A stretch of 64,000 nucleotides of DNA, taken from Anolis carolinensis (taxonomy: Eukaryota). Shown here piece after piece: positions 26,336 to 59,579 of this stretch (position 1 is the stretch's first letter; each line of letters begins with the position of its first letter). The DNA lies in assembly GCF_035594765.1 (NCBI RefSeq), contig NC_085842.1, positions 30,976,782 through 31,040,781 on the forward strand, in the 5' to 3' direction. Under the pieces are notes generated by a model. That model was not told the origin of the DNA, ran no database searches, and saw only the letters and a list, made by a program, of their open reading frames with translations. Both the position numbers and the translations under genes were made by a program.

Positions 26336-26521
26336 AGGCATAGGCAAACTTGGGCCCTCCAGGTGTCTTGGACTTCAACTCCCAGAATTCCTAACAGCCT
26401 CAGGCCTCTTCTTTTTCCCCCTCAGCGCGGCCGAGAGGGGAAAGGAAGGGGCCTGAGGCTGTTAGGAATTCTGGGAGTTGAAGTCCAAGACACCTGGAGA
26501 GCCCAAGTTTGCCCAGGCCTG
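26336..26521. mobile_element. Palindromic hAT MITE
   Basis: Same family as 181-366. Confidence 0.8.
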
Positions 26522-26527
26522 TTCTAC

Positions 26528-26930
26528 CTTAGGCAAGCCCTTCTGAAGATCCACGGCCTCCGCCAAAGGCCCCTTGCAGACAATATCCCGGCAGCAGAGC
26601 AGGCAGAATAATAATGGCGCCGGTTTTTCCCTCAGGCGGAGAGAGAGAAGGGCGCTGGCTGGCTGCTTTTGCCGTCGCTCAAGTTGGGCAGGGAGGCGAG
26701 GAACAGAGAAGTGCGCTGGTTGGTTGCCTCGTCTGCCGTTCGGTGCGTCAGCCCGCCTCTTCGAGGCTACTTCCGCCTGGGAAGGCGGGCAGGAGAGCTC
26801 TGGCTGGCTGCTTCTGCTGTGGCTTAAGTTGCTCAGCCCGCCTCCGGGGGGGGGGGTTAAGAAGTGGAGCAGCTGGTGGATTGGCTGCTTCCGCAGTTAC
26901 TCTATTTTTCAGCCCGCCTACTGACAAGCA
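26528..26930 (-). promoter_or_regulatory. CpG-rich island, probable promoter / non-coding first exon (minus strand tentative)
   Basis: High GC and CpG content; ETS motif ACTTCCG near 26769; minus-strand donor AAG|GTAGAA at 26527. Confidence 0.55.
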
Positions 26931-27350
26931 ACACTTCCCACCAAGCATCACTACTGGAATAGTTCCGCGATTGACCAGAGTATAGATCAGGCACGGGCAA
27001 ACTTCAGCCCTACAGGCTGTTAGGAATTGTAGGAGTTGAAGTCCAAAACACCTGAAGGGCCGAAGTTTGCCCATGGTTGGTATTTCAAGTGGCAGAGCTG
27101 TTTGGGCCTCTCAAAATTCCTGACTATTGAACAAGTTGGCGAGGGCTTCTGGAACTTGGGGGCCCAAACAGTTGGAGGGCCGCAGTTTGAAGGTGCCTGT
27201 TGTATTCCAACTAGATCAGTACGACAGATATTCAAATGGGTTCTTAATGGGCCATGTCTGTGCGTATGGCAGATTTCAAAGCCATATGTCCCAACTTTGT
27301 TGGTCCTTCTGACCATTTTCAAGACTTAATGTTATTGAGAAGATTGTAAT

Positions 27351-32400: not shown

Positions 32401-33019
32401 CCTATTGTCCTGAGAGTGGATCTACACAGAAGAATTAATGCAGTTTGAAATCACTTTAACTCCCATGGCTCAAAGCAGTGGAATTCTGGGAGTTGAAGTT
32501 TGATGAGACAACACTCTTTTGCAGAGTAGGCTAAAAGAGTAGGCTTGTCAAATAATGACCCCCATGATTTCATAGCATTGAGCTATGACAGTAAAATTGG
32601 TGTCAAACTGCATTAATTCTGCAGTGAATATGCACCCTGCACAGTTTTCCACATTATTTGGCTTCCAGACCTTTTATCATTCTGGTTACCTTTCTCTGGA
32701 AACATTCCAGCTTGTTAATATTTTTCAGTTTACCTCATCCTAAGATTCCACAGGCTGTTGCCATGATATTTAGCATGGAAACATAGTGCTATGACCGTGC
32801 AATTGGAAAGGGCCCATAAACAGACCATGCTCCAAACATACATCAAGTGTACCTGGAAAGAAATGTTAACACCAAGGTGAGAGTGCTGTGAAATTATATA
32901 TAAATGAATAGAAATTGTTCTCTTGCAGAGACCATTGATGATAAACTTCTTTCTAAAAAATACGAGAGGAGAAAAGGATAGTGGACTGTGAGGATCCCAC
33001 GAAAGCTGAAACAAACAGT

Positions 33020-33209
33020 ATGACACCTAGCAATGGAAACTATGGAAATGGACCAAAGATGACAGAAAAGGTGGCACAGAGCAATGGAAATGCCGCAAAT
33101 GGACCAAAGACTGCAGATCAGGTGGAACAGGGCAATGGAGACTCTGAAAATCGACCACAGCCTCTAGAACAAATGGGATTGCTGGATCAAAACATGAAGA
33201 AAGCAACTG
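33020..33209 (+). CDS. C-type lectin coding exon 1, cytoplasmic tail
   Basis: Acceptor at 32928, first ATG at 33020, phase-1 donor G|GTAAGT. Confidence 0.75.
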
Positions 33210-35347
33210 GTAAGTTACTGTTTCTGTTTAATAAGATAAGAGGATTGAGATTGTGCCTAGAATAAATGTTTCTGCCAAGAGCTGGAGGAGAATTGAAAAC
33301 GATACAGGTTTTATTGTCTGAGGAGTGGGAAACTGGTCTCTGGACTGCCTTAGTACCCAATCCTTTCTTACATTCCCAGGACAACCTGAAAGCATTCTTA
33401 CGTCCCGATTTTTCTTAAAAAATAGATGAAAGTGATAAAAAATACAGCAGATTAGGTTGCTTGTCCTTCATTACCCCTTGATTTTTTTAATTGATAAGGA
33501 ATGGTAATTTTTTATTGAACAATGAAACAAGAAGTAATGTCACATCTGCTTTGAGTCACTTGGCACAAGGTAGTATTCTCTGATAAGGGATTGTACAGGG
33601 TCCAAAACTGCCTGCCAGCCCAAGTGCCATCTTAATCCTTGTTCTTCATGGTTTAGTTAGTGACATACTATACATACTTGTGTGTAAATCGATCTCACAT
33701 GTTTGGTGAGGACAGGTTTGGGGCCCAACATTAAGGATTGTGATATGACTTGTGAAAAGGCCTGTGGATCTGTATGTGATGCTTCTTTTCAGATACTGAG
33801 TGCTCTGCATAGCACATGTGTCTGTTCACAGCCAGTTCATCATCATGATATATCATGCAGCGATTCACAGTAGTTATCCCCTTTATTGAAGGAATGTACA
33901 CTCAGTATGTATTTCTTTCTCTTAGATGGAGGATGGAAAGCCAAATGGAGCAAGACCTGGTTTAAGGCTGTGATTTTTTCAGTCATACTTGTTACTAGCA
34001 ATGTTGTTACTGCCTTCATTAGTGAGTTCTCAATGTCTTTCTTATCTATTTTATTTGATTACCACCTGTCTGTCATAGTTCTGTTTCAGAATTCATTGGT
34101 TTCCAGTTTTTCTTCAATACTAAGACACCATTGATTGTAACATGCAAACTAATTTCAGTACCACCAAGAGGGGAAAAAAACTACCGTATTTTTCGCTTTA
34201 TAAGACGCACCTGATGATAAGACGCACCTAGTTTTCAGAGGAGGAAAATGGGGAAAAATAATTTGAACTAAAAGATGACCCACACGTTCTTGTGAAATGC
34301 CAATTATGCTTGAAATTTTTCTCTGAGTGATACGACTATCATCCTGAGTCAATCTGTCAAACTTTTGCTTGTGAAACTCGGTGGTTGTTGTCATAGGACG
34401 TCCAACTCTTTGTTTGTCACTTTCCAAATTGACCGGCGAGCGGGGGTCCCGGATCATGGCCTCCAGCTTCCTCCGCCGGCCCGGGAGCAGCGCGTCTTCC
34501 CCGCTGGCGGGCGCTTGCGGGGCGGGTATTTTCCCCGGCGAGGCCGCCGGCTGCTGTGGGGGCCGGTAGTTCATGCCTAGCCCTTCCTCCTCCTCCTCCT
34601 CCTCCTCCGCTGGCTTCCTGGCGATGGCGGCTGCTCGGCTTCGAGGGGGGAGGAGGAGAAGGCAGGCGCAGCGGCGGTGGCAACAAGCGAGGGGCGCCTC
34701 CCGCCGCCAGCGCCTCCTGCGGGGCCTACTCCGAGAAATCCAGGCGGCGGCTCAGTCCCGGCCTGGACCGGCCAGGCCTCTTCTGCCTCGGAGGGAAGGG
34801 AGGGAGGCGAAGGCGAGAGAGAGCAAGAGAGGCCCGCCCTCAGCAGCCGGGGGGAGGAGGAGGAGGAGGACGGCCCCTTCCCCCCGCTCGCTCTCCGTTC
34901 CCAGAGCCAAGGAAATGGGCTCAATGGCGCCTCCCAAACTCTCCTCTTCTTCTTAGGCGGGAAAACAAGTCGCGTCCCTTCCCCTCAAATCCCTGAGGGG
35001 ATTTGGAGCAGCTTACAACAGTGTAAATACTCATCCATATTGAGAAACAGTACTGGTTGCATCCCCTCCCCGCCCCACCCTTCCAAGGGAAAAGTCATCG
35101 GCAGCAGCACGTGAGGTCATATTGCGTTTATAAGACGCACTGACTTTTTCCCTCTATTTTGGGGGGGGGGGGGGGAAAGTGTGTCTTATAAAGCGAAAAA
35201 TACGGTATATACATGCAGTCCCTAAGTTACAAACAACATAGGTTCTGTTGGTTCTTTCTTAAGTTGAATTGTATGTACGTCAGAACAGGAACATTTTCTA
35301 GCTGTATTCCCCCCCCCCCCCTCTCAATCTCCCCCTTTCCTCCCCCC

Positions 35348-35429
<82 letters not shown>

Positions 35430-38400
35430 TTTCAAATGCATAGGAAAGGGTTATCATCCCTGTGGTGTTTGTTTTGCTTTCTGTGCCCCTGTTCAGAAGA
35501 TTTCATCTCACTTTCTGTTCCTGTGATAATTAGATTTTGAAAACTTTGGCTTGTTGTGGAAACAAGGATTGGTGAGAAAGTTTCAGTGGAGACATTTTTC
35601 CCCATAGCTCTTTCAGGAGTGTATTTCCCTTCTGAGGAGGAGATTTCTCTCTCTTCCTGTTGTCTCGCCCCCCCCCCCCTTAAGTATGAGTCATTTGTAA
35701 GTCATATGTTGCACACGTGCATGCCTTCAAATTGCTTTTCAACTTATGGTGATCTCATTAATTTCATAAAGTTTTCACAGGCAAGGAGTACTCAAAGGTG
35801 TTATGACTGGGAGTAGAGATGTTACCTTGAAAAATGCCTATTTCTCTGTATTTGCTTAATTAAGGGCAGAGGCAAGAGATGGCATTTGCGGACAAGAGAG
35901 GTGTGAAGTTTCACCATTGTTTGTATTCATTCTTTCTACCTTAATTCTTTCCCCAAACAACCTCCCCCCAGCTGGCCTGACTTCCATTCTCTGAACTCAG
36001 CTAGATTAAAAAGGTCTCAGGGAGGGACTAATATAGATGGAAAGACAGAAGTGTACTGCCCTTCTCTTTCTACTTGCCTGTTCTACTCTGCAAACATTGA
36101 TTAAAAGTCTACACTGGTCTACATTTTGTAATTTTACAACTTCATATGTACACTGCAGAAATGCAATACAACTCTGTTAGTGAATGGCAAAGATGCATAT
36201 CTGAGCATTGGCAAGAGTTATATGATGTCTGCTGGGTGCTCCCGAAGCACATTCAACATTTTCCGTGCTCATTGAGCATATCTGATGTAGTCTGGCGTTT
36301 CTTAGCTCGTGTCCAGATGCACATTGGGGTTGCCTTGATGTGAATCAGTCTCAGCACTGGCTACTATTGCTCAAAAACATGTGTTGGTTGTAATGACATA
36401 GGACCCCCTATACTTACATGGACATTGCAAAACTATTCACTTCTATTTCATGCTCATGTAAATCCATTTAGAAAGATGTCTGGCCGAATAAGAATGTTGA
36501 CCAATTTAGGATTTGTGTTTTCATATAGATACAGGTTTGCATCACACTATATTTGCCTCGGGGCCCCTGGTGGCACAGAGTGTTAAAGCGCTGAGCTGTT
36601 GAACTTGCGGACCAAAGGGTCCCAGGTTCAAATCCCAGGAGCGGAATGAGCGCCCGCTGTTAGCCCCAGCTCCTGCCAATCTAGCAGTTCGAAAACATGC
36701 AAATGTGAGTAGATCAATAGGTACCGCTCTGGTGGGAAGGTAACGGCGCTCCATGCAGTCATGCTGGCCACATGACCTGGAGATATCTATGGACAATGCT
36801 GGCTCTTCGGCTTAGAAATGGAGATGAGCACCAACCCCCAGAGTCGGTCACAACTGGACTTAACGTCAGGGAAAAATTTTACCTTTTATATTTGCCTCAC
36901 ATCATGTAGTAATGCTTTCAGCCTATCCTAAACCCCCTTTTATAGTCTTTTCTCTCTCAGTCCCCTCAGCCACCAGCAGCAGCTCATTCAGACTGAGGGA
37001 GGCTTTACTACATTAGATGCTATGGCATTTAAATTTGCATACTCCAGCCTTCTTCCTGTTGTCCTGAAATGGAAGACAGAGCAAGATGGAAAGTTACTTG
37101 CATGCAAGCAATTAATGTGCATCATTCTAAAAATATGAACTGCTGGCACAGAAGATCCTTGGCGTCTATCAATATTCAGTATCAATTGAAGTTTTCAAGG
37201 GCAGGTGCACAGAAAGCACATTTTGTTATATTCAGTTTGAAAGTCTCTGGGTGCAAAGACAACTAGGAGGAAATTAATCTTCCCCAGATATGGTCACAGC
37301 TGTTATATTAGCCTTGGTTGAAAAGAGGTACTTCTAGCCCTTGACATTCTCTGTCAGGATCATCCTACCTACCTGCCTACTGCTCCATCTCCCTGCCAAA
37401 AAAGAGGGGGAGGCTGGGAAGATTAATGGGGAATGTAGGATAGGTAAGACCATCTATTATTTTGAAAATTGAAACTGTAGTTAGAAAACCGTGAGAATGG
37501 AGTTTGCCCAGTGGGGAGGTGGTCTGACACTCTCTGCTTGTGCAGATAGCACCAAATCCTTGAGTTCCTCCAATTGCAAGCATTTTTCTCCAAAAATTAG
37601 TGCAATCAATAAAGTGAGACTTACTAAATTGAGCCCAAGGGCTGAATTCCAATTTGGAAAAGCTCTCTTTGTATGTATGTGTTGTATGTGTGTGTGTCAT
37701 GGGGTGGGATGCGAACAAAGCAAAATAGATGGGGTCAGGAGTAGTTCTAATCAGATTTCAAGTCTGCAAAAAAGAGCTTAATTCAATGCCAAAGCTTTGT
37801 GACCTTTAAATACTCCCTTATTAGTAAAAATAAGAAGTGGAAGTAGGCCTGAGGTTCATTGTCCTTTAACTAAATTCTTATTCTTTTCTTTGTTTTAGGT
37901 GTAACCATGACCAAATCATCTGTCCCACACCCAGTAATAATGGTCCTCTCCTGTCCTTCAGGATGGGTTGGATATGAAGGCAAATGCTACTACTTTTCTG
38001 AATCAGAAACAAACTGGAACTTGAGCCAGAGCAATTGCTCTGCATCTGGTGCTTCCCTGGTTACAATTGAAAATCAAAAGGAGATGGTAAGGGAGACTTT
38101 CAGACTGCATAGTAAGGGTTTTGTACCCTGTATAAGGTGCTAACAAGCATCTGTGGGATCTGAATGCAATGAACCTGTGCAACGTTGAACTCATGATGGT
38201 GGTAGAGGCTTGTTGCATGATTGGAATACTTGCCAGAGTGAAAACTAGAGAAGGCTCTTACGCCTTTCATGATTGTGTGAAATAAGGGATTTCAGCAAGT
38301 ATAAAAAACAACACTAAGTTTCCTTCCTCAAGTGGCAAGGAAAGGCAGGTAATCAGTAAGTGATGATGACGTTTCTTCTTGAAGGAAACAATGAGTATTT

Positions 38401-41054
38401 TAACAGCTATTTTACTACACATGAACCATTGTTTTCTATGCAAAATCAAATTCAAATGAATTTTGCAAAGTATAAACCCCCAATTAAAGTATGTTTTACA
38501 CAGAAAATATTATTTTCACCACATCATCATACCCATTCACTTTTCATTTCTATTGCTGTTCACAACACACAGTCTGGCTATAAAATTTGCCTACAGACCC
38601 TTTACTCCCTGCATTTGAAGAAGTAGACTTAGTCTAAAAAAAGCTCATGCTGCCAGTATCCTTCACTCTGACTCTAATATGCAACAAGATAATTTTGCTT
38701 GTTGTGATTCAGGATTAACATGGGTATGTCTTTTCCTGAAAGTGTTTAAATGTTTTTCAATCCCTAGGCAACACCTGTTACAATCCTCTCTTCTACATTA
38801 AAAGTATGAAATTGCTCTTCAGTTTTCACCCTAGTTTCCTTCCTTTGTAACCCACATTTCTATAACATGGTGGTCAGTGTTTATGATGCTTGACAATGTG
38901 AGACACATTTTCTTTAATTACAGGACTTCATAATGCAAGCTAAGGGACCAACTGAGTATTGGATTGGCTTGAAGAGAAAGAAAGGGCAGCACTGGGAATG
39001 GGTAAATGGAACTCTCTTCAATGACTGGTAAGGTTTTCCAAGTTGCTAAAATGGAGAGGTATCAGTCAAAAACCAAACAACAACCAAAATATTATAAAGT
39101 CACATAACTAGAAAATATGAGGGTTCAATTTTGCAATTACAAAAATGATGACACACAAAATTTCAGGATTCAAAACAAAAAGAACACAAAAATGGCAGCA
39201 GAACAGAAAATCACAAACATTGTGACATAATTGAGTCAGATAAAGAAGAAAACAATATTTATTAGCTCGGATTATGGTGAATCTGAACTTTCTAAAAGAT
39301 ACAAACTATTTGGTGTTCCATGGTCTTTAGTCAGGGAGCCCCCGGTGGTGCAGCATGTTATAGCGCTGAGCTGCTGAACTTGTGGACCAAAAGGTCGCAG
39401 GTTCGAATCTGGGGAGTGGAGTGAGTGCCCGCTCTGCCAACTTCTGCCAACCTAGCAGTTCAAAAACAGGCAAATGTGAGTAGATCAATGGGTACCACTT
39501 CAGCGGGAAGGTAATAGCACGCCATGCAGTCATGCCGGCCATATTACCTTGGAGGTGTCTACGGACAACACCGGCTCTTCGGCTTGGAAATGGAGATGAG
39601 CACCAACCCCCAGAGTCAGTTACAACTGGACTTAATGTCAGGAGAAAACCTTTACCTTTACCCTTAGTCTTGAGTCAATGAGTAGCATTTGCTTCTGACC
39701 CCAGGCTCATTCTGGTTTGAGGCAGTTTAAAAAGGGATTTCTCCCATCAATTGCAAGAGGAACTTCTTTTTAAAAATTCTAGTTGTGCAGAAGAAATTTT
39801 ACTCTATTTGATTCCTCATCAATTTTGGCTTGGCCTTTTCCAGTATAGTGTATCATATACATGGAGAATTTTGGGTTTGTTGTGTTTTCTCTTTCTGTAA
39901 TTTTGTGTCCTTCTGGCATTTTTACAAGATTTTGATATTTTGTGCCCTTGAATTTGTGTATCATGGTTTTGTAATAACATAATTTAACTATCATGCTTTG
40001 TAATTGTATGATTTTATTGTGTGGTTGTTGTTTGGTAAGACAGTCCTTCTTTAGATTTTAGGTTTCAGAAGATCTTGAGACAATGTTAAAAGGTTTCATT
40101 TTAACATTTCCCCTCCTTAAAACAAAAACGTTTGTTTGAAAAGTGGTCTGTTTCTACAGTTAGGACATTACATATTTTATGTATTTAGTCTTTCAGGGCC
40201 ATCCCTCACAAAGCAGCATACATAAAAGAAAAAAAGTCACAGATACAGTAGGCAGATAAATCTAGATCCAGGTGGCCAAAGCTATTTTTGTGAATCTATG
40301 TGGCAAATCCCAGAATTCCATGGGAAGTTTCCATTGCAGTTAAAGTGGATTCAGAGTGCTATAACTTTGTAGTGTGGATGGCCACAAGATACTGGGACAA
40401 TAAATGGAAGAAGCAAGGAACTTTGCAAGGGAAAAGAAACATGATTTTGCTGACCTCCTGCTAATAACTTATTTTTTATCCTCCATTTTCCTGATTGGTA
40501 AAATAAGAAAATTAATTGGTTGCTTTCACATATATCTTTATTTATTTCAAGCAAATTTAGAGTGGTCTGCCAGAATTTCTGATCTGTAATGCAAGGTAGA
40601 TTCACATCTATCCAAGTGCATGTTACATGGACTGCAGTCAATAACTTCTGTTTATAGACTTCACCATTCTCATTTAAAAAATTAATAGATCCTGCATGTT
40701 CACTTTACCCTGTTAAAAGATATACAGGGTGTTTCATGGACTCAAGTGTAGAATTTGTCGAGTGCTTTGAGTGTGTATTCCTGGATGATCCTTTCTGTTT
40801 CTTTCAACTCTGATCTTTCTATGTTTTATGATTCTATGAGGGGTTTTTTTTCTTTGACACAACATAAATAAGGAAACTACTGGTAGTGTGATGTAGGTCA
40901 CGACATAGGGACTTCATTTCTGTTGTCCTCTCATTGCAGGCTCGACATTGGAGCTGATGGACCCTGTGCTTACCTGAATGATGAGAAGGCCAGTTCAACA
41001 TTATGCGGGACAAGACGAAATTGGATATGTGGCATGTCTGCTCGCACAGCCTAA
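33020..41054 (+). CDS. Type II transmembrane C-type lectin-like receptor (CLEC2/CD69/avian BLEC-like), 5 coding exons, 230 aa
   Basis: Exons 33020-33209 (cytoplasmic), 33926-34021 (TM), 37899-38086, 38924-39027 and 40940-41054. Intron phases 1,1,0,2 are typical of NK-complex lectins. All six CTLD cysteines are present, plus CPxGW..KCYYFS, YWIGL and CAYL...C..R.WIC motifs. An in-frame TAA at 32954 lies upstream of the ATG. Confidence 0.92.
33926..34021 (+). CDS. C-type lectin coding exon 2, transmembrane segment
   Basis: GGWKAKWSKTWFKAVIFSVILVTSNVVTAFI: basic residues then a hydrophobic stretch; phase 1-1. Confidence 0.85.
34275..34418 (-). mobile_element. Mariner transposase HTH fragment
   Basis: DKQRVGRPMT....K.DRL.QDDSRITQRKISSIIGISQERVGH matches the GRP linker and second HTH. 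Confidence 0.8.
34419..34990 (-). pseudogene. ROCK2: Transduplicated fragment of the ROCK2 5' region and coding exon 1
   Basis: MNYRPPQQPAASPGKIP...GRRRKLEAMIRDPRSPVNLES resembles the recalled ROCK2 N-terminus (MSRPPPTGKMP...[22 protein letters not shown]), preceded by a GC/CpG-rich leader. No further ROCK2 exons are in the window. Confidence 0.85.
35213..35720. mobile_element. Tigger-like MITE with an internal (CT)n(AT)n microsatellite
   Basis: GCAGTCCCTAAGTTAC terminus; sister copy at 44712-45108. Confidence 0.65.
36561..36887 (+). mobile_element. Sauria SINE
   Basis: Full-length tRNA-like head and ACCTTT tail. Confidence 0.85.
37899..38086 (+). CDS. C-type lectin coding exon 3, stalk and start of CTLD
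   Basis: LSCPSGWVGYEGKCYYFSESETNWNLSQSNCSASGASLVTIENQKEM. Confidence 0.95.
38924..39027 (+). CDS. C-type lectin coding exon 4
   Basis: DFIMQAKGPTEYWIGLKRKKGQHWEWVNGTLFNDW. Confidence 0.95.
39334..39663 (+). mobile_element. Sauria SINE
   Basis: Full-length copy with ACCTTTACC tail. Confidence 0.85.
40940..41054 (+). CDS. C-type lectin coding exon 5 (last)
   Basis: LDIGADGPCAYLNDEKASSTLCGTRRNWICGMSARTA, then TAA. Confidence 0.95.
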
Positions 41055-50454: not shown

Positions 50455-50574
50455 GCTTAGACGATCAAGTCATTTCTGTTGCATTAAAGTTACCTTTCAT
50501 ATTTTTTTTAAAAATCCTTTATTTACAAATATTTTCTGCCTAGTGAATTCTAGGAAAATGGACGATTCATACAT

Positions 50575-51000
50575 ACACAGCCAATACATTCCCCTTCTTA
50601 AAGTCTCCCAGCAGGTGGGGGCGGGACATCCTGCAGCTGAAATCGGAAGAGAGAGAAAGAAAAGACTTCCGGTGTCTCTACTGCTCCGTCTCTCCGCTTC
50701 TGCTTCTTCATCGCTGCAGCCGTTCTCCTTCTCGCATCTCTGTTGGATTCTGGGCCTTTCAGCCTCCCTTAACCAAAGGCAAACCAGAGGCCTGAATCCT
50801 CTCAGCGCCTTGCCTTGTTCCTGCGGAGGAGGGAGCCCAGCATGGAGGAGGGAGATCCCGGGGAGAGAAGGAAGCTGTTGAGGGGGATCCAGGCTCGGCG
50901 AAGCAAAGGCCCCTCTGCGCATGCGCATGTCCCGTCTGAAGCAGGCCAAGGGCCCTGGAGAGAAGCCGCCCTCGACGAGAGAAGGAGCGGAGTAAGTGCC
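50575..51000 (+). promoter_or_regulatory. CpG-island promoter and first exon
   Basis: CCAAT at 50581, GC box at 50617, ETS ACTTCCGGT at 50665, NRF1 TGCGCATGCGCA at 50916, donor GGA|GTAAGT at 50992. Confidence 0.75.
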
Positions 51001-54574: not shown

Positions 54575-55920
54575 ATAGAAATTTTTGTGTCTTGTCACAG
54601 GCAAAAATGCAGAGGAGTTTGGAGCAGCGATATGCGATCAAGTTTTGCGTCAAACTTGGAAAATCTGGCTCCGAAACGCTGCAGTTGTTGAGGACAGCTT
54701 ATGGGGATGCTGTGTTGTCTTCAGCCCAAGTCTTCAGGTGGCACAAGGCATTCAAGGACGGAAGGGAGAGCGTTGAGGATGAACAGCGTGCTGGGCGGCC
54801 TTCAACTGCTAGAACTGAGGAGAATGTGGCTCGTGTGAAGGCGGTCCTGGATAGGGACCGAAGATTGAATGTGCGGTTAATTGCAGAGGAGGTAGGACTA
54901 CCGAAAACAGATGTCCATCGAATCATTACGGAAGATCTGCGTATGAGAAAAATTTGTGCAAAACTGGTCCCAAAGAATTTGTCAGATGAACAAAACAACC
55001 ATATGTTGATTTCTCATGAACTCTTGGGTCGTGTGACAAGTGAGCCCAACTTACTGCAGCGACTGATAACTGGGGATGAAGCATGGGTTTTTGAGTATGA
55101 TCCCACAGATGAAAAACAAAGTTCAGAGTGGCACACTTCCCAGTCACCTCAATCAAAGACTGAATAAGCAAATCAAGAGTACAATCTATGCTCATCTGCT
55201 TTTATTTATTTATATCATTTCTATCCCGCCTTTCTCACCCGAGGGGACTCAAGGTGGCTTACAGATCTGGCAAGATTCAATGCCAATAAAATAACAATAC
55301 AGTAGAGTCAAAAACATCAAGCAATAAAAACAATTAGGCATTAAAACACATAAAACAATATACAAAAATTAAGACATATAAAGTGCATAAATCCATTCGT
55401 CCAGAAATCCTGCACATAATCCGTGAACCAGGCCATGTCGAAGTCATAAAATTTATTCATTGAATGCTTTTGTGCATAACCAGGTATTTAGCTTCTTTCT
55501 AAAGCCCAGAAGGGATAGAGCCTGCTGGATGTCGCAGGGGAGGGAGTTCACAAGGGAGTTGTTCACAAGGAGACTTTGTCACCCAGGCAGACTGTGTATC
55601 AAGCATTTTACTTACAGGTACTCAAGCTTTTGAGAAACAAGAGTTGTGTGCTTCCACTGTTTAATTGCAAACACATGGTTTGATCAGCATGCCAGTGTGC
55701 TAAGTCACAGATCATTCACTGTGAGGGACTTTTTGCTTCAAAATATTATCACAATACTTCCCCAACCACTGTACAACCCTGTCTTGGCACTGTGCAATTT
55801 CTTGTTTCCCCTGAGCTCCAAACCCACTTCTGTAGATAACATTTTGGTACACTTGGAAACATTCATGCAACTGTGATGAGGGCTTGGAACAACATCTCTA
55901 GTGAAGACTTCTTTCACTGT
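54575..55920 (+). mobile_element. Mariner transposon remnant, split by an L2-type insertion (about 55203-55555)
   Basis: The decayed catalytic half resumes at about 55555 (GVVHKE...QTV.Q.FYLQVL; LPQPLYNPVLALCNFLFP is a degenerate YSPDLAPCDF motif). Confidence 0.85.
54601..55167 (+). CDS. Mariner transposase N-terminal ORF (both HTH motifs, linker, first catalytic Asp); candidate exon of a domesticated or fusion gene
   Basis: MQRSLEQRYAIKFCVKLGKS..ET...VFRWHKAFKDGRESVEDEQRAGRPST...KICAKLVPKNLS...ITGDEAWVFEYDP. Preceded by a splice acceptor ttttgtgtcttgtcacAG. The mariner identity is clear; gene status is inferred. Confidence 0.55.
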   Translation, partial: AKMQRSLEQRYAIKFCVKLGKSGSETLQLLRTAYGDAVLSSAQVFRWHKAFKDGRESVEDEQRAGRPSTARTEENVARVKAVLDRDRRLNVRLIAEEVGLPKTDVHRIITEDLRMRKICAKLVPKNLSDEQNNHMLISHELLGRVTSEPNLLQRLITGDEAWVFEYDPTDEKQSSEWHTSQSPQSKTE

Positions 55921-58960: not shown

Positions 58961-59049
58961 TGTTAGAAGGCTGAGGGGGGAAAGAAAGGGGCCTGAGGCT
59001 GTGAGGAATGCTGGGAGTTGAAGTCCAAAACGCCTCGAGAGCCCAGCTT

Positions 59050-59579
59050 TCTAGAAGTGGAGCAGGGCCCGCCTCTCACAGTTGCTCCGCCCACTCGGAG
59101 GAACAGGAAGGAGAAAAAAAAGCGCTTCCCGAGCCCCAGGCGCCATTTTTCTACCTACCTTCGCCGAGGAGGGTGCATTGTCTATTGTCCTGCTTCTCCG
59201 TCGCTGAGGCGATTCCATTCCTCTTCCTTCTCACTGTTTTTTGGACTCGGCTTTTAAGATTTCCTTTCTTAAAAAGCCTTAAACTTCCCCGAAGTTGCCT
59301 TCTCCGGCCTGGCGGAGGAACCAGGCCTAGGGCCCTCTCCATCCACAGCGGGAACGGAGTAAGTACGGCCTACATTTCGGGAAGGCCTATATTTCGCTTC
59401 CCGGCTGAACGCTCTGAGCCACGTGGCGAGGGCCAGGCCTGGGCGCGGAACCGGGATGCGCCGCTGGCCCAGGCAGGGATCGCCATCCCGTTTCAGGGCC
59501 GAGGCCTGGACATGGATGTTGGGCTCAAAGCCCTCAGCAGGGAAGGGGGCGGGCCGTCTGAATAACGGACAGCCAGGGG

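Follow-up and report, generated by a model that had tools for sequence, protein, structure and literature searches.

The 64-kb window, by which we mean the whole stretch of Anolis carolinensis DNA that was analysed, carries a gene for a CD69/CLEC2-like type II C-type lectin, and a transposable element with foreign cargo lies antisense to this gene, 162 nt into its intron 2 (34022–37898). Exon-by-exon translation upheld the position in lectin intron 2 that a sequence-only reading of this DNA had proposed. The features of the locus are as follows.

32981–41054, forward strand: five-exon CD69/CLEC2-like type II C-type lectin gene, its exons translated singly.
About 32981–33209, 33926–34021, 37899–38086, 38924–39027 and 40940–41054, forward strand: the lectin exons, with intact splice sites.
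34182–34183, no strand: left TA, putative target-site duplication, read from the sequence.
34184–34280, reverse strand: Passer (Anca-PasserC) end, downstream of the transposase gene, assigned over 97 nt against the published element with 1 mismatch; it includes the terminal inverted repeat (TIR) at 34184–34210 and a subterminal repeat at 34217.
34276–34420, reverse strand: internal, high-copy fragment of a mariner transposase gene (linker and second HTH region), assigned from mariner loose ends and peptide identity.
34419–34574, reverse strand: coding part of ROCK2 exon 1, codons 1–52, cut 6 nt before the splice donor, assigned from PDB, protein and orthologous DNA matches.
34575–35107, reverse strand: GC- and CpG-rich leader, presumably ROCK2 5′ UTR and promoter.
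35108–35205, reverse strand: the other Passer end, presumably the upstream one, with a TIR at 35179–35205 and a subterminal repeat at 35130, assigned from the TIR match and a depth border.
35206–35207, no strand: right TA, putative target-site duplication, read from the sequence.
34155–34574, reverse strand: 139-codon chimeric open frame through ROCK2, mariner, the Passer end and flank, taken from the frame list.

The element spans 1022 nt (34184–35205), its paired TIRs of 27 nt differ at a single position, and a TA borders it on both sides; all of this had been claimed from the letters and was found as described. A TIR match of this kind occurred nowhere else in the window and in 0 of 100 shuffles, and the two bordering TAs probably represent a target-site duplication. 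The inner border at 35108 was marked by a loose end before this position and a jump in depth. The Passer, ROCK2 and mariner pieces share one reading direction, and no second copy of the element was found within the 64-kb window. The surroundings consist of a TA run between an older Passer-like repeat end (34104–34181) and a Tigger-like MITE (35212 to about 35712) containing a (CT)23(TA)15 microsatellite, which places three TA-targeting elements at one spot. In the host gene, lectin exon 1 contains three imperfect 51-nt repeats (33021–33173) that code for an Asn/Gly-rich cytoplasmic tail; among the runs compared below, X11 shows a variant joint 33143>33221 at these repeats, and the exon 1 region is raised 6-fold in X2. 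The lectin sense strand also has a splice-acceptor look-alike inside the element (pyrimidine run and AG, 34939–34956); no strong donor follows it, and by its sequence it could disturb lectin splicing.

The element's ends point to the Passer (pogo) family. Anca-PasserC-lizards, described from Anolis carolinensis, is 1849 nt long, encodes a 422-aa DD35D transposase, makes a TA duplication and has 3 copies (PMC7386202 Table S1), and an intact 422-aa DD35D copy is present in the anole genome (PMC7386202). Compared by eye, positions 34184–34280 correspond to its first 97 nt at 96/97 identity; the TIR, short and starting CCGTA as in Passer elements, agrees at 28 of 29 positions; and in two runs a loose end at 34280 extends exactly as Anca-PasserC. 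In our reading, the published sequence at this end is the reverse of the transposase C-terminus, and 34184–34280 is therefore the downstream Passer end. Six-frame translation of the element revealed no DD35D transposase gene between the TIRs, so it is not autonomous. The likeness to Anca-PasserC (Gao et al. 2020, PMC7386202; Wang et al. 2023, PMC9976928) thus extends to the TIR, the 97-nt end and the TA duplication, whereas the published element has a transposase gene and the anole element described here has its interior replaced by host and mariner DNA. Together, these features support its assignment as an apparent non-autonomous Passer derivative with mosaic cargo.

The host part of the cargo begins with an ATG at 34574, from which a reverse-strand frame runs through 52 codons to 34419. 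Against the PDB, this peptide had ROCK2 proteins as its top 11 matches (best E 2.7e-4). It also aligns with reptile-type ROCK2 exon-1 proteins from residue 1 or 7, and a similar N-terminus occurs in a gecko protein and in two genomic read-throughs giving ROCK2 exon 1. The earlier likening of these 52 codons to the ROCK2 N-terminus was thereby confirmed, and, judged by its orthologues, the captured gene appears clearly to be ROCK2. Orthologous genomic DNA from two loci (L001 and L003) shows, after the matching Ser, two more codons, both for Leu, and then a GT donor, the end of exon 1; the capture therefore ends 6 nt short of the donor, which agrees with the proposal that it was cut two residues before the exon end. 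A further claim, that other ROCK2 exons are absent, also stood: no further ROCK or kinase motif was found in the 64-kb window. Record 30 of run X5 stops exactly at 34419, as a branch to parental ROCK2 would produce, and may reflect such a branch. Searches of proteins and of metagenome contigs, which have length limits and cover little lizard DNA, did not bring up the anole ROCK2 parent, a blank that carries no information. We rejected a retrocopy or processed pseudogene, as the cargo holds only part of exon 1 and the element contains neither exon 2 nor an AATAAA or poly(A) tail.

Contiguity with the ATG suggests that the leader derives from the ROCK2 promoter and 5′ UTR. The orthologous loci L001–L003 are distant and match at the DNA level over only 70 nt of coding sequence, with none in the leader, so they are unable to test its origin. 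The CpG observed/expected ratio is 0.97 in the coding part, 0.66 at 34575–34900 and 0.42 at 34901–35108, with the window at 0.30, and the leader shows no unusual folding (z −0.28). Isolated CpG-rich patches also occur elsewhere in the window, at 26500–27000 and 59000–59500.

The sequence-only reading had recognized both leader and ROCK2 codons in the interior and had missed a 145-nt piece of mariner transposase between these codons and the Passer end. Mariner loose ends lay on both sides of 34276–34420 in all four runs compared, depth over this segment was thousands of times that of the flank, and its peptide is 68–74% identical to mariner pieces in two anole gene models (P0003 and P0004). The Passer–mariner joint shows a 5-nt microhomology (34276–34280) and the mariner–ROCK2 joint a 2-nt overlap (34419–34420), a putative microhomology as well. 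The source of this piece may be intron 1 of ROCK2 or, alternatively, an earlier derivative of Passer. The window's other mariner (54592–55167), an open frame for a mariner DNA-binding domain downstream of a CpG island at 50500–51000, was rejected as donor, being only 26% alike.

One organism was represented by sixteen runs, drawn from five studies, that contained 0.58–0.65 of the words; four of these runs, each from a different study (X1, X2, X5 and X11), were compared over 32900–35345, with contigs classed as human left aside. Contigs of unique flank had a depth of 6 in X1, 31 in X5 and 7 in X11, and single cargo contigs in these three studies stood at 3.6–15 times flank depth; the raised depth stops at the element ends, and the unique flank is single-copy. 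X1 record 6 and X11 record 13 span the ROCK2–mariner joint, each at about ten-fold flank depth; past the joint they extend for 30 and 29 letters into sequence that is mariner only. This length is at or slightly below the 31-letter bar, and is as far as words of 31 letters can reach into a high-copy repeat. Two derivative joints in X11 (34227>34528 and 34908>35117) connect each of the Passer ends with cargo at ~3 times flank depth, and a loose end at 34459 in X2 reads as 34284–34298, another deletion. Furthermore, a contig of single-copy depth (X5 record 25) crosses from unique flank into the left TIR, covering 24 nt of it; the contig differs from the window by one letter and thus places a Passer end at the same site in another haplotype. 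We rejected joints 34167>35169 and 34167>35172, which comprise 20–21 letters within repeats. No contig listed in the four runs spans the whole element or the Passer–mariner joint; the empty-site joint 34183>35208 was likewise absent from them, a result that is uninformative since both flanks are repeats.

We estimate about 4–10 copies, a small mobile family, with contig depth as a rough guide to copy number that includes the parent and is to be halved if the flank contigs represent single haplotypes. These copies are known from depth and joints, the contigs breaking in the repeated ends. The further copies that the sequence-only reading had predicted appear as raised cargo depth and derivative joints. 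As a separate observation, a loose end at 34226 in X2 joins the Passer left end to another GC-rich interior, possibly further cargo.

The copy in the window is young, with a divergence of about 1% from the majority of the family: at 7 positions of the 688-nt cargo (34527, 34538, 34678, 34682, 34825, 34896 and 34916), or 1.0%, each of the four runs has a majority letter other than that of this copy. Four of these seven private changes turn CpG into TpG or CpA, hitting 3.6% of CpG positions vs 0.5% of others, a 6.9-fold excess (Fisher p = 0.016) obtained with n = 7 changes and the majority letter assumed to be ancestral. Decay of CpG to TpG or CpA is a mark of germline methylation. Since the private changes are mostly of this kind, the high CpG content of the copy, in which 93% of CpGs remain, reflects youth and not protection, and germline methylation with neutral drift is supported. 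Intact CpGs had earlier been taken to imply a young or unmethylated insertion; the first holds and the second is not supported. Likewise, in the notion of a ready-made CpG island antisense in an immune receptor gene, the antisense intronic position stands, whereas the CpG decay points away from a ready-made unmethylated island. The two coding private changes hit Ala13 and Met16, where the majority letters are shared with other ROCK2 proteins. Differences from the majority are non-synonymous in 5 of 6 cases in the mariner piece and in 7 of 8 across the 139-codon frame, which is therefore without purifying selection. A functional chimeric protein was rejected as unlikely on the latter ground, and no protein record of a 139-aa chimera was found.

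These findings bear on a view in which the ROCK2 CpG island is a mobile promoter, open in some copies and perhaps in this one, that drives lectin-antisense transcripts or the 139-aa chimeric protein. It would account for the retained CpGs and the open ATG and frame, and at least 30% of Pack-TIRs, the animal elements considered below, are transcribed (PMC8277862). It also draws on run X2, in which single cargo contigs reach 1,900 to about 6,000 vs about 15 for the flank, more than 100 times flank depth with a peak at 34458–34867, like a chromatin or RNA library. However, in X1, X2 and X5 the contig that has this copy's 34825 letter, together with a gap of 1 nt at 34808, stays at the depth of the flank (in X2, 17.6 vs about 15), and the X2 signal may stem from the parent gene. 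Should X2 be a chromatin or RNA library, activity would lie with the parent or with other copies, and not with this copy or its sister; should it be a methylated-DNA enrichment, or should the 34825 contig be the parent, this reading of activity would reverse. The private CpG decay, the excess of non-synonymous differences, two of them at residues conserved in other ROCK2 proteins, and the loss of the splice donor also argue against a mobile promoter, and none of the confirmed RNA runs contained more than 0.04 of the words. We therefore consider it unlikely.

Our preferred explanation, in which we have good confidence, is that the element belongs to the anole Passer family as a multi-copy, non-autonomous Pack-TIR and most likely sits in intron 2 as a functionless passenger. 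The animal elements that correspond to Pack-MULEs have been described under the name Pack-TIRs (Tan et al. 2021, PMC8277862), and the anole element, with both TIR ends around non-transposon DNA, has the defining structure. Template switching during gap repair or replication is their proposed origin, and microhomology at breakpoints is typical of them (PMC8277862). By analogy, a template switch during Passer repair or replication would have copied the ROCK2 5′ region and the mariner piece, and synthesis would then have rejoined the Passer end at the 5-nt microhomology. As both ~97-nt ends were kept, PasserC transposase could have acted in trans and carried the product to further TA sites; this transposition, a step that has support, would have yielded the roughly 4–10 copies and some deletion derivatives. 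One copy sits at the TA run in lectin intron 2, in antisense orientation, and has since then apparently been methylated in the germline and drifted neutrally. The capture of a gene fragment by a TIR element, the core of the sequence-only reading, is thus supported by the TIR ends around ROCK2, the cargo joints and the depth.

A single in-place gap filling of an old Passer MITE with ROCK2 and mariner, without later transposition, would instead assign the extra depth to segmental duplication or collapsed paralogues. Animal Pack-TIRs most often arise by such filling (PMC8277862), and the missing empty site, uninformative as it is between repeat flanks, would agree with it. Against it, the raised depth ends at the element borders next to single-copy unique flank, derivatives with other internal joints are present, the TIRs are nearly identical to those of a young autonomous element, and in-place filling favours nearby templates, yet the window has no other ROCK2 exon; we regard it as quite improbable. 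An assembly chimera that joined reads from ROCK2, mariner and Passer, which the sequence-only reading had named as fatal to its claim and to which the absence of a listed contig over the whole element might be credited, is scarcely credible given the ROCK2–mariner joint at about 10-fold depth in two independent studies, the flank-to-TIR joint in a third, the matched TIRs with TA duplication and the coherent private CpG decay.

A survey of 100 animal genomes found 370 Pack-TIRs, four of them multi-copy (frog, alligator), and 0 in the anole, for which only 77 annotated elements were available in anoCar2; the origin of the multi-copy cases was left open for missing outgroups (PMC8277862). With multi-copy Pack-TIRs such as Pack-hAT-N8_XT, which carries the CAPSL 5′ UTR in frog, and Ssk-FB4 in fly (PMC8277862), the Passer-borne element shares TIR ends around a copied host 5′ region, breakpoint microhomology, several copies, GC-rich cargo and a parent that is not nearby. 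It differs in its pogo/Passer carrier, its squamate host and its mosaic cargo with a second transposon, and depth suggests more copies than the 3–4 of published multi-copy Pack-TIRs; moreover, expression and selection set Ssk-FB4 apart. The earlier analogy to plant Pack-MULEs holds for the mode of action, as the rice elements (PMC5861414) are also non-autonomous TIR elements that move GC-rich gene pieces and raise local GC. It does not hold for the class: rice Pack-MULEs belong to another superfamily, with long TIRs, 8–11 nt duplications and thousands of copies, whereas the anole element has short 27-nt TIRs, TA duplications and a handful of copies, and the fitting animal class is Pack-TIR. 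In the same species, hobo/hAT elements and Helitrons (Novick et al. 2011, PMC3014272) likewise gain filler DNA, often from other transposons; that account does not mention exons or pogo elements. We found no published account of a ROCK2-carrying anole element in a search that was thin on subscription journals.

A second cargo may exist. In three UniRef entries of Anolis carolinensis (P0001, P0041 and P0042), the first LIM domain of a LIM-homeobox protein continues in frame into the same Passer-end peptide, and each entry has a tail of its own. We take this domain to be Lhx1/5-like; its best PDB matches were Lhx3/4. Judged by these sequences, the entries probably represent a second Pack-Passer cargo at three sites that was annotated as genes, although splicing onto a Passer end may be an alternative. 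On a bolder and tentative view, which we think doubtful, Anca-PasserC would be the vertebrate counterpart of rice Pack-MULEs, repeatedly capturing promoters with CpG islands, along with first exons, from unrelated genes (ROCK2, LIM-homeobox) and spreading them to several sites, with some copies open or transcribed.

Collectively, our findings suggest that the ROCK2 element is probably a new multi-copy Pack-TIR of a known class, without function at this site. Although this kind of event is known, a mobile multi-copy gene-capturing family is rarely seen in vertebrates. For annotation, such elements are a warning, as they yield false short gene models, three of them in UniRef. The family is young (~1% divergence), its host species offers population genomes, close relatives and an intact transposase as partner, and first exons of several genes appear to be carried between the same Passer ends; the mechanism of capture and its bias toward CpG-island 5′ ends are thus testable in a vertebrate.
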